64,000 nt of DNA from Tubulanus polymorphus. Its lineage: Eukaryota > Animalia > Nemertea. The DNA is taken from assembly GCF_964204645.1 (NCBI RefSeq), contig NC_134034.1, forward strand, positions 10,180,962 to 10,244,961. Reading direction: 5' to 3'. Both the position numbers and the translations under genes were made by a program. The notes below the pieces were generated by a model, which did no database searches, was not told the origin of the DNA, and saw only the letters and a program-made list of their open reading frames with translations. Positions 16,001 through 22,000 of this stretch are shown one piece after another; position 1 is the first letter of the stretch; each line of letters starts with the position of its first letter.

Positions 16001-19000
16001 AACTAATACCACTCTTGTATTATCCTAGTCAAATGTAAAGAATTTATAATATCATACTTGAATGAATTAAAACATAAATTACTTCTGTTACTTCATTTTC
16101 AGAAATAAAGCATAATATGTATTCAATACCATTAATACGTATTTAATACATGGTATTAGGGTATCTAATAGGGTATCTAATACATGGTATTAGGGTATCT
16201 AATAGGGCATCTAATACATTGATACCTCAACCTCATACATTTCAACTAATATATTTTATATTTTCAGCTAATTTAACAGTCGATTTCTTATTTTGATTCA
16301 TATAATTTTTCATCAAGTTCATGAATATACATGTGATTTCTCAAACTCTTTTTATTTTTATATCTTTTATTGCATTTTTCACAGCATTTAATATTATTCA
16401 ATCTATCTGAAATATAATTTATATTTTCTATTAATTCAGTGTATCTAATTTTACAGCAATCATAGAATTCTAACAACTGTTTTATACTATAAATTGAAAA
16501 AGAAAATAAACCTGTAAGCATAATAATTGATTTAATATTCTGTTGATTTTTATATATTAGATGTAATAAGTTTAATATATTTTCACTCATTTTTATAGAC
16601 AAAATATATAGAATAAATTAAATTAAAAGATGCTGTTTTAATCCTCTAAATCATTTTCTAAATTAACTTTTTTATTGTTATTCTTTCTGTGATTGTTTCC
16701 ATTTAACTTCTTTAATTTCTTGCTCAATTTTATATTTTCATTCATCAAATCCTTACTGATATTTTCATAATAAAAGAAAAGCGCAGCCAATATTAATCCG
16801 CCTGCTACTAAATAATGTTTCAAATCACTTTTCCCAGTTGGAATGAAACCATCCATTTATTTAAGAGAAAAATTAAACAGTTTATAAAATATTTAATATT
16901 TATATGTTTCAAATCAAATAACAATTAAACTTACTACTAATTCTTTATGCCGCTGAGAATTATATTTTTGCTTGTGCGTAATCAATTTTATCACCTGATA
17001 TTCTGTTATATTATTCTTGATCATTTCTTTATCGAAAAATTCATTTGATATGTAAATATTTTCATCATTATGAATTAAAATTAGATGGCGCAATTTATTT
17101 CTAAAATATCTAGGATTAATGAAATCAATATTATATTCAGAATTATCTTTCAATAGTTCTAAACGCTCGCATTGCTTAATTTTCATATTGTTAAGTTTCA
17201 TTTTTCTTAAATAATCAGATTCTTTACGTATATCACATACATTTATGAAATCATTAGAATTTATCTTTAAATATTCAGTATATTTTTTCATCAATTCAAA
17301 ATCCATTTTATCAATTATTTCAAAATGATCGTGTGTTATCTTCTTTACTTGGAAAATAGGTTTTTCTAATTTTGATAAAATAAAGTGTCTATCAGGGCTA
17401 TGAACGCCTATTTTTAACTTTTTGATGATTTTTTCTATCGAAGACAATTCAAAATAATTATTATTTAATACGTCTAATTGTAATGTTTTTATCAATAATT
17501 CTCTTAAATCAGTAGTAGTTTCATAAAAGCCTTGATCTGTTAAAATATAACTGAAATAAAGATCTGTTATACATTTACATTGAGTTGAAAAACCTCTAAT
17601 TTCAAAAATTGTATTATTGTCAATTCCAGATATTTTAGGAGTATAATCATTTAATTTTACTTCAGGAATTATTTCAAGTTTTTTAAATTCTGTCTCAAAT
17701 AATTCATTATCAATATCTAATTGTTGCTTTAATTCATTACAAATTTTATTTCTATTTTCATCTATATCTTCTTGTAATTGTTTAAGTTCTTTCATTTCTT
17801 CTAACTTTTTAAATTCACTTTTAGATAATAATTTTAAATCAAAATCTTCTTCAATATCAAGTGCATCTAATTTATAAAAAGGTTTAGATTTTATATTGTA
17901 TCTCTTTTTTAAAGTTGTAAAACTAATTCCTGTTTCACGTAATTTAAATCTAAATATAAATTTATTCAATACTGTAAACATTGAATTAGTTGAAGATATA
18001 ACAGTTGCTCCTTCAGTTTTAATATATTTTTTTGCTTCAATAATGAATTCTGATTTATCATCATTTTGATTAATTGTTAGGTATAAACATGGGATATTCT
18101 TAATTGTAAACATTGATAAAATAAGTAAAAAGGAGGACTCTTCAATATTTTTACTTATCCTAGATTTATATCCTATAAATTTCCTTGCTAATAAATCACC
18201 ATAATAACAGAAATAAAAGCATTTTTCAATCAAATCATAAATACATACGGTCTGTTGAACCTCATCAAATAATGATTTAAGTTGTAAATATGTAGGTGAA
18301 TAGTAAATATTTTCTTTTTTTAAGTATTGTTTTATTTTTTCCATCACTTTTAATCCTCTTTTAAATGAAATACTTGTTATTTCAATTCTAATCAATCCTG
18401 TTTCAATTGATTTTTCAAATGATTCTTTTAACCTCTCTTGATAGCAATTTATGTAACTCATTAAATTTGAACCGAAATTTATATTTACACCAGGAGATTT
18501 GAATTGACATGCTGTTTTATTATAGATCTTTATTTTATCATCCTTATGTAATGCTGAAACACAACTATTGGAAAATTCTTTTAGAACTTTATATTTTCTA
18601 TTTTCGAACATTGATTTTATTTCATCTGAATTAAATGATCCTTTAAAATCTTGTGTCACATCTACATCTAATATATTGTAATTTTTTTCATTTAATAATT
18701 TTTCAATATTATCCATTTTCTGTATTAATTCATTTAAATTTTGATTGCATAATGAAATTTTAAATACAGCAATATAATCTGTTAATTTTAATTCTTGATT
18801 AATTCTACTTAATATATATGATTTTGAATTATCATCATGAATTGTTAAAACACGTGTAATTTTTATAGCTAAGTTATCCAATATAATATCTCCTTGATTA
18901 AAACATTCTTTAATTTCATAATGTGTTATCTTTCTCTGATTAATGTTTAGAAAAGTTGTTCTATTTTCTTTTATAATTTCTTTTTCTAACATGATTTTAT

Positions 19001-22000
19001 ATAGCATTATATTATCGCAAAATATATCTGATGTTTCAATTAATTCATTATTTTCAGATTTATAATACTTATTTATATTTACTCCTGAAATATCTGCTAA
19101 ATTATTGTTAACAGTTAAATAATATAATATTGAATTTATATATTTATTACTCATGTCTTTCGCGGGAACTTTAATTAATCTTGTGCACATTTATATATCA
19201 AATTTTTATTAAAATAGGTTAAAATTCAAAAAGAGTTAGAGTTCGCTGAAACCTTACGCTTTAAAATATTTTTTTACCCTTATTGGTTTTATAACTATAC
19301 ATTTTAGATCTAATACCAATGAACTCTATCATTTCTTCACCGCCTAATTCATCTTTGAATTTACCGGGAACTTTTTTATTATCATTGCTAAACAATTCAT
19401 GATCTTTAGGATAGTTACTGAAATCAAAATGATGATTTAATATTTTTAAATCATCAGTTATGTTATCACTTTTTATCTTTAATATGTGTTATGATATTTT
19501 GATTTAAAATGGTGTGATTTATTGCTGCGAGTATAATATTTTCCACAATTACATAAAACGCTTTCATTAGGATTATATTTAGGCGCAACAATTTCATCAT
19601 CAAAATTACATTGAATTCTAATATCTTTATAAGAATTATTATTATCTAATTCACATTGAATTCCAATATTTGATGAATTTTCATTATAGATAATTTGTTT
19701 ATTATCAAAATTGAAATAATATAATTGTCTTTTTTCAATTCTTAAGTTAATCAAATCATTGTAATCTTTTGAAAGTATTATATCATCATTTCTTTCATTG
19801 AAAGGAGTTTTAAGAATATTAATTATGTTTTCATCTAAAGTTCCTTTAAAATTTAAAACTGTATTGAATACTTTAGGACTTTTAACACCATTATCAAAAG
19901 TATCTACTAGTTCAGTAATTAAATATGTTTCATTTGATAATATTTGATTAATCATAGTTATGTTATCGATTTTATAATACCTTGCGGACACTAAATTTGT
20001 TGCCGAAATATAATTTTTAATGTAAAACTGTGAAAATGATTTATTGGTTTCATTGATTTCGATTTTAAAGTTGGGTTCTTCTTCTTTCTTCATTTTTATA
20101 ACAAAATTTTTATTAAAACTCATTCAAATATAAATATTCACTGTTTTAAATATGAATTATTTCACTCACACTTTACTCACACTTTTATATTTAAAAATCT
20201 AACTCATACAAATATGAATATTGAAATATGTTTAAAATATCAATTCAAACAACTCGTTAATTACTCGTTACTTTTTAGCGAGTAAAAAATGAAAAATAAA
20301 TTCGAGCGTGTGAGAATTTATTTTTCATTTTTATGAGTTTCGCGAGTAATTCAAGTAGAAATTGTTATTATTTTTATGTTTTTTCGTTTTTTAATGGGCT
20401 CGACCGTTCGACCTTTGGTATGAAAGCCTATTACCCCTATTACTACTGCCTTGCAACTAGTTGTCTCCAATCGCAATGTCGATGTACGCTAGGCTTTAAG
20501 CTGAAAAAAAGTTGAAAGGGGAATAAACGTTGCTCGAAACATACAAAATTAAACGTTGCTCAAAATATATCTCTTCTATTAAAGAATGTTTTATCTTTGA
20601 CTGAATCATCGTTGGATTTCTCTCGTCCTCCATCTTACACGGATAGTGTGTATATTCTCGACTCACTGGTCTGGTATTATCTTCACCCAGTCCTGGCAGT
20701 GGTTGTATCTACAGTGATCTCCGCTGCTCTACGATCTTAGTGTAACCCATCCTCCCCTGGCAGGGATTCGAACCCGATGGCATCGAGATTGCCACGGCAC
20801 GAAACCCTGCCATAATCGACCGTGTGCGCAGATACATGCGCAGTTCAGATGATGTGATTTTTTATTTAGCCAATCAGAAATCCCGTTTTATTTTATCCCG
20901 GGTTTTCCCATTTATAGTTCTTCCTTGAAATTTGCCTCAACGATTATACAACGAGCAATCTGATTGGTGCCGCCAGTTTTCGTTCGGAAAGCTGCGCATG
21001 TACCTGCGCACCCGGTCTACTGATGCAGGGGTTCGTGCCGTGGCTGAGTGTAGCGATGCCATCTGGTTCGAGTCCCTGCAGAGGGAGGATGAGTGTAACC
21101 ACCCAGACACGTTCACTCAAATTGTATCTGTATCTGAAGTTATTAGGCCGCTTATGGTCCTTATGAGGCGCTATGGCGGTGATGTCGCAGTTAGCGTCGC
21201 ACTGTGGTACATCAGACACTAAGGTTCTTGGTGAAGTATTATCGAAAATATTTTTCAGTGTATCGCGCTACCGGAGACATAGGACACGGAAAAGGCAGCC
21301 GTTGGATCGGCGATTTTGATCTTTGCCATACAATCAAAACTGCTCAGTACTGCTCATCAATAGCCGGCGGTGGAAAATCTAGAGTAAGTAACGTTTGTTT
21401 ATGATTTATTCACTGTGAAGGAAATTATAGTTTTTCGGTTTAATTTATTCGCATAAAATACTAATGTATGTTCGATAGTCTGTGACACCTCCTCTCCGCG
21501 CATTTCAATTTATAATTTCAGTTGCGAACCAGCTCATTATACATTTATCATAATCGTTGCATCGATCTGTTTTCGTATTCGGAAACAAATGTTTAATTCA
21601 CTGTCACTTGTTTGTTAAGCGCGTCCCTATCACAACGGTAGGCCGAACGATAATGATTGCACTATACTGTTAATGCGACCCGAAGAAGGAACCGAGATAT
21701 CGTGGGAGAGCGAATCCGTCCTCAGCTCCGCACAACGACACAAATTGAATTTTGACCCGACACCAAAATAGATAAACAACTCATGTGTATATAATTGAAT
21801 TTTGACCCGACACCAAAATAGATAAACAACTCATGTGTATATAATTTGAATTTTGACCCGAGACCAAAATAGATAAACAACTCATGTTTATATAATTTGA
21901 ATTTTGACCCGAGACCAAAATAGATAAACAACTCATGTGTATATAATTTGAATTTTGACCCGAGACCAAAATAGATAAACAACTCATGGGTATATATTCC

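Follow-up and report, generated by a model that had tools for sequence, protein, structure and literature searches.

Within a 64,000-nucleotide window of the genome of the nemertean Tubulanus polymorphus (NCBI RefSeq assembly GCF_964204645.1, contig NC_134034.1, positions 10,180,962 to 10,244,961 of the forward strand), there are two AT-rich islands that share their terminal sequences, and the larger of them carries a gene of 758 codons for a candidate tyrosine nuclease that resembles the Rep_trans (PF02486) proteins of bacterial plasmids and phages in its predicted TATA-binding protein (TBP)-like fold and in its conserved residues. The window is the whole stretch of DNA that was analysed, and all positions below refer to it unless a contig is named. 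The open reading frame (ORF) begins with ATG and is uninterrupted by a stop codon, although it is embedded in DNA of ~21% GC, where stop codons abound; at the base composition of the island, 758 stop-free codons would be expected by chance with a probability of ~1e-31. A preliminary description of this DNA, drawn from its letters only, had proposed an intronless ORF encoding a Rep_trans-type tyrosine nickase. The ORF is borne out, and the motifs quoted for it (ILDNL, which is aa 103–107, ILDVDVTQDF, KIKIYNK and GLIRIEI) each lie where they were placed, with 46 aa from D177 to Y223 and 47 aa from Y223 to E270; the long C-terminal extension with a charged stretch is likewise present, ~470 aa in length and with its charged helical part beyond ~aa 450. 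The gene and the parts of it discussed below are as follows.

16914–19190, minus strand: 758-aa ORF, TBP-fold Rep_trans-like candidate tyrosine nuclease with a ~470-aa C-terminal extension (ORF, homology, model)
18315–19073, minus strand: predicted TBP-like catalytic domain, ~aa 40–292 (AF2 secondary structure, Foldseek)
19014–19016, minus strand: codon of D59 (in FCDNI), candidate metal ligand of motif N' (conservation, hhalign path)
18645–18674, minus strand: strand ILDVDVTQDF (aa 173–182; D175, D177, T179, D181), motif I-like (conservation, hhalign path)
18516–18536, minus strand: strand KIKIYNK (aa 219–225), motif III-like, with Y223 the candidate nucleophile (conservation, hhalign, model)
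18378–18398, minus strand: strand GLIRIEI (aa 265–271; G265, R268, E270), motif IV-like (conservation, beta-strand 266–273)

The strict form of this ordered motif pattern arose in 1 of 100,000 shuffles of the 758-aa protein and a loose version in 0.27%, figures that are only indicative because the pattern was defined post hoc. An internal repeat suggested by a secondary HMM match between aa 300–443 and aa 600–758 had no BLASTP support and was rejected.

The intact gene spans the right arm and the unique centre of the larger island, copy 1 of the element, whose flanks have ~40% GC. The anatomy of the two copies can be read directly from the DNA.

12704–20444: element copy 1, 7,741 bp, ~21% GC, ends 5'-AGTAAT...ATTACT-3' (GC profile, terminal motif, junctions read)
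12698–12703: left target-site duplication ACTGCC, 6 bp (junction read)
20445–20450: right target-site duplication ACTGCC, 6 bp (junction read)
12704–15792, plus strand: left inverted arm, 3.1 kb, 99–100% complementary to 17358–20444
17358–20444, minus strand: right inverted arm, 3.1 kb, 99–100% complementary to the left arm
15793–17357: unique centre, 1,565 bp, with the 3' end of the nuclease gene, two small ORFs and a tandem repeat
51784–54194: element copy 2, a nearly perfect palindrome of 2,411 bp that shares the termini of copy 1
51784–52125, mirrored at 53853–54194: 342-nt terminal palindrome of copy 2 (inverted-repeat arms)

Both islands start and end with the sequence 5'-AGTAAT(A/C)GGGGTAAT(A/G)GGCTTTCA, a terminal motif that occurs six times in the window against an expectation of 0 and that was found neither in the IMG/VR scan nor in the metagenome scan. 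Copy 2, also AT-rich, is bounded by a perfect 6-bp duplication of its own (AACGCT, 51778–51783 and 54195–54200); it lacks the nuclease gene, and its sole gene encodes a 216-aa relative of a 214-aa ORF of copy 1. The 342-nt terminus is predicted to fold back on itself as an almost perfect DNA hairpin (dG -122.8 kcal/mol, z = -23). Since both islands have perfect 6-bp host duplications and defined termini, they are genuine insertions of a defined element, and hence neither assembly artefacts nor host-level duplications; a host-level palindromic duplication as the source of the 3.1-kb arms was ruled out in particular because the target-site duplication brackets the whole 7.7-kb unit. As the arms are nearly identical and the duplications intact, the insertions appear to be recent.

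The protein belongs to a large family. A word-index search returned five homologous proteins, four of them 39–52% and one 28% identical, and a word-index search with a 60-sequence profile returned only six proteins; a profile of aa 1–443 matched 583 cluster representatives at E<=1e-3, of which 354 remained at E<=1e-10 and 79 at E<=1e-30. Most members are 750–950 aa long and have the conserved region at the N-terminus, so that members typically have a long C-terminal extension. Nearly all reside on contigs of 2.5–10 kb and 16–36% GC from aquatic, soil, rhizosphere and other metagenomes. The survey of homologs and gene neighbourhoods that the preliminary description had called for thus gave 583 clusters; the neighbouring genes in the contigs examined are orphans, with the exception of a RING-finger protein and a zinc-finger protein, and neither these contigs nor the element itself yielded an integrase. 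One relative, the contig L025 (10.3 kb, 17.5% GC), has a RING-finger protein gene at 8014–8907 on its minus strand and a dense array of 45/70/115-nt repeats at 7212–7850. When scanned with two peptide patterns only, none of 185,579 prokaryotic genomes yielded a relative, and such pattern-limited scans found none in IMG/VR and 15 loci of the family in JGI metagenomes.

Conservation was counted over 110 representatives, 16–53% identical to the window protein. Four residues (D181, Y223, K225 and G265) are invariant in all 110; D177, K221 and R268 are each present in 109, E270 in 108, T179 and K144 each in 107, and N224 in 105, so that five of the six motif residues originally named (D177, D181, Y223, R268, E270) prove to be conserved. 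The same cannot be said of D105, the sixth; this position has D in 5 of 68 non-gap homolog residues, and its place is better taken by D59, an Asp in 86 of 88. Position 219, a K in the window protein, is R in 106 members and K in 4. The Arg of the RxD motif of Rep_trans is replaced by an Asp, as had been noticed from the start: D175 stands at that place, where 84 members have D, 11 S and 7 E.

The family extends to an insect chromosome. It includes the RefSeq protein XP_065207965.1 of the mealybug Planococcus citri, and an 84-Mb chromosome of this species has three tandem intronless paralogs (464–2296, 13077–15836 and 21691–25140 of locus L021; E 1e-72 to 1e-116). A nicotinate phosphoribosyltransferase gene on the opposite strand extends across them, and because they have host-like GC and no inverted repeats nearby they may be old or domesticated copies. 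Several of the metagenome contigs, for their part, end in fold-back DNA. Five (L005–L007, L025 and L030) have ends within perfect inverted repeats around a segment of 63–595 nt, and in a sixth, L033, of 9.5 kb, inverted repeats extend to both ends. The stretches concerned lie at 7162–7689 in L006 and at 7010–7537 in L007, with others in L005, L025 (9654–10296) and L030 (1–217). L006 and L007 carry the same segment, with a 175-aa gene, in opposite orientations in different samples, which looks like the flip and flop of hairpin ends or an invertible segment.

A first AlphaFold model, based on six sequences, had a predicted local distance difference test score (pLDDT) of 72.8; the model made with the 110-sequence alignment (AF2) reached a pLDDT of 93.8 and a predicted TM-score of 0.91. 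The conserved residues occupy alternating positions of the predicted beta-strands 172–183, 218–224 and 266–273, with Y223 at the end of strand 218–224 and D59 at the start of strand 57–67. In a Foldseek comparison with the PDB no match reached E<=1e-3; those of high probability include the TATA-binding protein 1ais (prob 0.99, TM on target 0.48) and staphylococcal RepDE (4cwc, prob 0.90, and 4cwe, prob 0.85, over ~250–260 aligned columns). The first, shallower model had matched 4cwc and 4cwe with prob 0.93–0.94 and, alone of the two models, RepSTK1 (4cij, prob 0.69). Against BFVD, the model of aa 1–443 gave 13 matches at E<=1e-3; the BFVD matches include the Inoviridae 'Replication-associated protein G2P' (E 1.7e-4, prob 0.97) as well as giant-virus TBPs and TBP-like early-transcription-factor subunits, further ones are unnamed proteins of 290–500 aa, and two weaker ones are named Inoviridae sp. 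We therefore assign aa ~40–292, with moderate confidence and with a TM on target of 0.24–0.48, to a predicted TBP-like fold class similar to RepDE and RepSTK1. A fold unrelated to Rep_trans, the outcome that would have spoken against the preliminary description, is not what the model gives: it is TBP-like, and RepDE and Inoviridae G2P are among its best Foldseek matches. The BFVD search also returned uncharacterised giant-virus proteins of 770–1,300 aa (among them Mimivirus R327 and proteins from Pyramimonas orientalis virus and Megaviridae), aligned over ~400 columns at E 5e-5 to 2.5e-3; these might be genuinely related to the two-domain N-terminal region as a whole.

The Rep_trans proteins themselves have a TBP-like fold and a triad of two Asp and one Glu with a Tyr, which are D46, D142, E214 and Y191 in RepDE (PMC13107129, PMC13595969), and their catalytic Tyr is located in a beta-strand (PMC5714925), a rule that the candidate Y223, on a predicted strand, fits. 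A search of a large protein collection with RepD returned only near-identical staphylococcal proteins, and the Rep_trans alignment used here was assembled from eight proteins of plasmid and phage records; invariant in all eight are A141, D143, T173, Y175, G177, S181, Y188, N189, K190, R209 and E211 (RepD numbering). The best segment of the hhalign comparison of the two alignments places the R-x-Y-N-K of the family on the R-I-Y-N-K of Rep_trans, pairing Y223-N-K225 with RepD Y188-N-K190. When the path is greedily extended, D59 falls on RepD D43 (motif N') and D175/D177/T179/D181 on RepD R137/D139/A141/D143 (motif I), so that three of the four motifs are lined up by profile-profile comparison, below significance. 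Residues D59, D177 and L266-x-R268-x-E270 are conserved, lie on predicted strands and follow the Rep_trans order. Global mode gave no alignment of the family with Rep_trans, and a comparison with RepD alone, which put motif IV of the family on motif I of RepD at E=0.062, was judged not meaningful. The comparison shows that invariant residues of the family and of Rep_trans correspond, in the same order and within the same fold class: an N-terminal Asp, then D-x-[AT]-x-D-F, [RK]-x-Y-N-K and R-x-E strands, as seen in pT181 RepC, pC221 RepD, RepSTK1 and the inovirus gpII-type proteins. The differences are also plain, for the family has ~24 extra residues between the Tyr and R-x-E and a protein 2.5 times longer, and it is found on eukaryote-associated AT-rich elements with terminal inverted repeats (TIRs) or hairpins, whereas Rep_trans is found on circular bacterial plasmids, phages and integrative and conjugative elements.

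Besides the nuclease gene, which is its only large ORF, copy 1 contains the following features.

13958–15837, plus strand: broken nuclease copy of the left arm, with a frameshift between ORFs 13958–14920 and 14917–15837 and its C-terminus lost at the arm boundary
19479–20123, minus strand: 214-aa ORF with a Cys/His-rich C-terminus, right arm (ORF list)
13025–13669, plus strand: left-arm copy of the 214-aa ORF (arm complementarity)
16638–16856, minus strand: 72-aa ORF with one hydrophobic transmembrane-like stretch (read by eye)
16288–16602, minus strand: 104-aa ORF with a C2H2 zinc finger (weak Pfam zf-C2H2, E=5e-4, below gathering score)
16139–16219: internal tandem repeat, 34 bp x 2.4

The Pfam matches of the copy 1 ORFs include no polymerase, helicase, integrase or capsid, and a Pfam search of the 214-aa ORF gave no significant match; its homology to a 318-aa zinc-finger ORF that adjoins the nuclease gene of a relative was rejected after comparison. 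A helicase of the transpoviron kind was likewise rejected as the identity of the large ORF, since inspection by eye showed no P-loop in it and Pfam gave no helicase domain. The 15-nt motif TTTTAATAAAAATTT occurs four times (13030, 13934, 19200 and 20104) against an expectation of 0, just upstream of the nuclease gene and overlapping the start of the 214-aa ORF in both arms, and may be a shared promoter or regulatory element.

We consider it probable, by a fair margin of belief, that the window protein is the DNA-processing enzyme of an AT-rich, TIR-bounded mobile element, a TBP-fold and Rep_trans-like enzyme that serves a rolling-hairpin mode of replication, with insertion carried out in trans. 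In such a scheme aa ~40–292 would form a TBP-like pseudo-dimeric beta-sheet domain of Rep_trans architecture, in which D59, D177 (with D181) and E270 would hold a divalent metal while Y223, on a neighbouring strand, would attack one DNA strand in or near the palindromic termini. The Tyr would thereby become 5'-phosphotyrosyl-linked and free a 3'-OH, from which a host or helper polymerase could carry out strand-displacement synthesis. Since long hairpins can form at the termini and each of the two copies is a large palindrome, we take rolling-hairpin, terminal-resolution replication of a linear element to be more likely than replication of a circle, and the fold-back ends of the related contigs would fit replication of this type. 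The C-terminal ~470 aa, predicted to comprise a charged helical linker and beta-rich modules, may serve to bind DNA or to oligomerise. Insertion into the chromosome is probably accomplished separately, by an integrase supplied in trans, because the duplications and termini are Maverick-like and the element encodes no integrase.

A number of results weigh against this reading. Pfam returned nothing for the window protein at E<=10, PF02486 and TBP included; for the 110 members at E<=1, no family was recurrent, PF02486 included, among the matches listed (25 of the 60 weak families). Searches of the window protein against PHROGs, NCBIfam and PDB, by sequence and profile, gave no match, and the 110 members had no recurrent match in PHROGs and NCBIfam. 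The hhalign comparison of the family with the eight-sequence Rep_trans alignment has E=0.32 and a probability <1%, and it leaves motif IV unaligned because the Tyr-to-Glu spacing is 47 residues here and 23 in RepD, a doubling that comes in addition to the Asp or Ser in place of the Arg of RxD. Motif II ([TS]-x-[YE]-x-G) is unrecognisable, in that only the conserved T/S of the 'NCLT' strand of the family pairs with RepD T173 and the Tyr and Gly of the motif are without a counterpart. The Foldseek E-values are 1e-4 to 1e-2 with a low TM on target (0.2–0.5), and the nucleases score no higher than TBPs and non-catalytic giant-virus TBP-like proteins. The element, moreover, encodes no polymerase, helicase or integrase by Pfam, and to our knowledge a 6-bp duplication is not left behind by rolling-circle enzymes. 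With E=0.32, sequence alone does not establish homology to Rep_trans, and as the profile match is not significant we read the family, with moderate confidence, as putative new, eukaryote-associated TBP-fold tyrosine nucleases and not as a member of PF02486. Of the original proposal of a Rep_trans-type tyrosine nickase, then, the TBP-like fold class and the conserved residues hold, and membership of PF02486 by sequence does not.

The main rival to a replicative nuclease is that the protein inserts the element itself, as its own transposase or integrase, a dimeric TBP-fold enzyme that makes a 6-bp staggered insertion and has no role in replication. Such an enzyme would be encoded by the only large ORF of an element that has inserted twice with defined ends and perfect 6-bp duplications, and for which, as for the related contigs examined, no integrase was found; Rep_trans relatives are also known to be multifunctional, acting as Rep and relaxase (PMC5714925). 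We nevertheless regard it as unlikely, for none of the known tyrosine nickases of the Rep_trans type produces target-site duplications, the combination of a 6-bp duplication with AGT...ACT ends is the signature of the Maverick integrase (PMC8097293) and points to an enzyme in trans, and copy 2, without a nuclease gene, was inserted with the same signature. A slightly less likely explanation still is that the protein has no catalytic role and binds DNA, or regulates transcription, as a TBP-like factor of a virus-like element, comparable to the early transcription factors of giant viruses. TBPs and VETF-large-subunit-like proteins are indeed among the best structural matches (prob 0.98–0.99), and the zinc-finger ORFs, the transpoviron-like layout and the lack of a helicase in the element agree with it; what it leaves aside is an invariant Tyr with three near-invariant acidic residues, the R/K-x-K-x-Y-N-K and R-x-E strands that form a signature common with Rep_trans and not with TBP, and the lack of a Pfam TBP match.

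That the whole is an artefact, whether bacterial or organellar contamination, a chimeric palindromic assembly or a chance ORF, we think very improbable. The 21% GC of the island against ~40% in its flanks, and the palindromic form of both copies, which fold-back read artefacts can also have, would be expected of one. Both copies, however, have clean junctions with perfect 6-bp host duplications, the ORF has a chance probability of ~1e-31 and a large and conserved family, the two-pattern scan turned up no relative among 185,579 prokaryotic genomes, and three paralogs lie on an insect RefSeq chromosome, that of Planococcus citri.

The element that we propose to be served by a replicative TBP-fold nuclease has points in common with several known systems. 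Its protein recalls Rep-Arvir (DUF7845), a group of TBP-fold endonucleases of archaeal viruses and plasmids that has been linked to Rep_trans only by structure, Tyr and acidic residues, a structural link of the same kind and strength as the one found here (PMC13107129). Rep-Arvir differs in the context of its Tyr (KHYYM, against YNK in the family), in a winged helix-turn-helix domain that was not detected in the family, and in being archaeal, whereas the family has a eukaryote-like context and was not found in archaeal genomes by the two-pattern scan; DUF7845 (PF25227) was not recurrent among the 110 members, among the matches listed (25 of the 60 weak families). TBP itself has the fold class in common with the family, but a Pfam TBP match is absent and the signature of an invariant Tyr and acidic residues is found in the family and not in TBP.

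In layout, copy 1 is like the transpovirons in its size of ~7 kb, its AT-richness, its TIRs, its internal tandem repeat and its zinc-finger and small membrane-type ORFs (PMC11788076), but the largest ORF of transpovirons is a helicase and that of copy 1 the TBP-fold candidate nuclease, and the present copies are integrated in a cellular chromosome with duplications. Use of a giant-virus early promoter was rejected, as the motif AAAATTGA is not enriched (4 occurrences, 2.2 expected). The Maverick integrase signature is a 6-bp target-site duplication with AGT...ACT termini (PMC8097293), and both copies have such duplications and ends; they are nonetheless 2.4–7.7 kb long, compared with 15–20 kb for Mavericks/Polintons, and have no genes for a protein-primed polymerase, integrase, capsid or protease. 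By analogy with the rolling-hairpin replication of parvoviruses (HUH NS1/Rep), the palindromic hairpin termini and an element-encoded candidate tyrosine nickase would be equivalent parts, and palindromic dimer forms would be expected intermediates; the nickase fold is HUH there and TBP-like here, and no capsid gene is present here. No HUH-family Pfam match was found that would indicate the HUH endonuclease domain of Helitrons or Replitrons, and the fold is TBP-like; the element is not a Helitron-like rolling-circle transposon, and its nickase more likely serves replication or terminal resolution.

The DNA around the insertions is consistent with an animal host. A 348-aa ORF at 9039–10085 on the minus strand has a weak match to an endonuclease-reverse-transcriptase of the LINE type, and tandem Core-2/I-branching glycosyltransferase ORFs at 56482–57300, 61846–62661 and 62910–63635 (Pfam Branch, E down to 2e-30) point to local gene duplication in the host. 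The host DNA that flanks copy 1 (10874–12703 and 20451–21091) is itself an inverted repeat, with a ~340-bp unit (10874–11212 and 20748–21091) that is 94–97% complementary between the two sides and a GC-rich unit of ~75 bp, present about four times on the left (12386–12703) and once on the right (20453–20500). Copy 1 may have landed in a foldback-type host repeat. The left flank also has 20/41-bp tandem repeats at 11873–12202, and a 51-bp tandem array at 21694–21996 adjoins the right flank. The 340-bp repeat has tRNA T-arm-like ends of the GGTTCGAATCCC type in inverted orientation; ARAGORN and Rfam made no call there, and Rfam and tRNA scans of the whole window found nothing. Two simple-repeat arrays of ~180 nt (5337–5528 and 23523–23704), 18 kb apart, are 98–99% complementary.

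In our literature searches we met with no account of a eukaryotic rolling-circle endonuclease that has a TBP fold, and the eukaryotic rolling-circle and rolling-hairpin systems of which we know (Helitrons, Replitrons, CRESS and parvoviruses) are all based on HUH enzymes. Rep_trans is apparently restricted to bacteria, and its only distant relatives, the Rep-Arvir proteins, are archaeal (PMC13107129, April 2026; PMC13595969, August 2026). We give about even chances to the broader proposal that the family is a third, eukaryote-associated branch of the TBP-fold (Rep_trans/Rep-Arvir) tyrosine endonucleases, one that replicates, by a rolling-hairpin mechanism, a widespread and undescribed class of small linear elements, AT-rich and ending in hairpins or TIRs, which can integrate into animal chromosomes with Maverick-like 6-bp duplications. 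If this is true, the enzyme (Y223, D59, D177, E270) and its DNA substrate (the 342-nt terminal hairpin) would form a testable pair for studies of replication. The scale of the family, with hundreds of clusters, small AT-rich elements, and members in insect and other animal-like genomes, would then mark a new class of eukaryotic elements, mobile or virus-like, that consist almost wholly of orphan genes, and the TBP-fold type of tyrosine nuclease would be present in all three domains of life.

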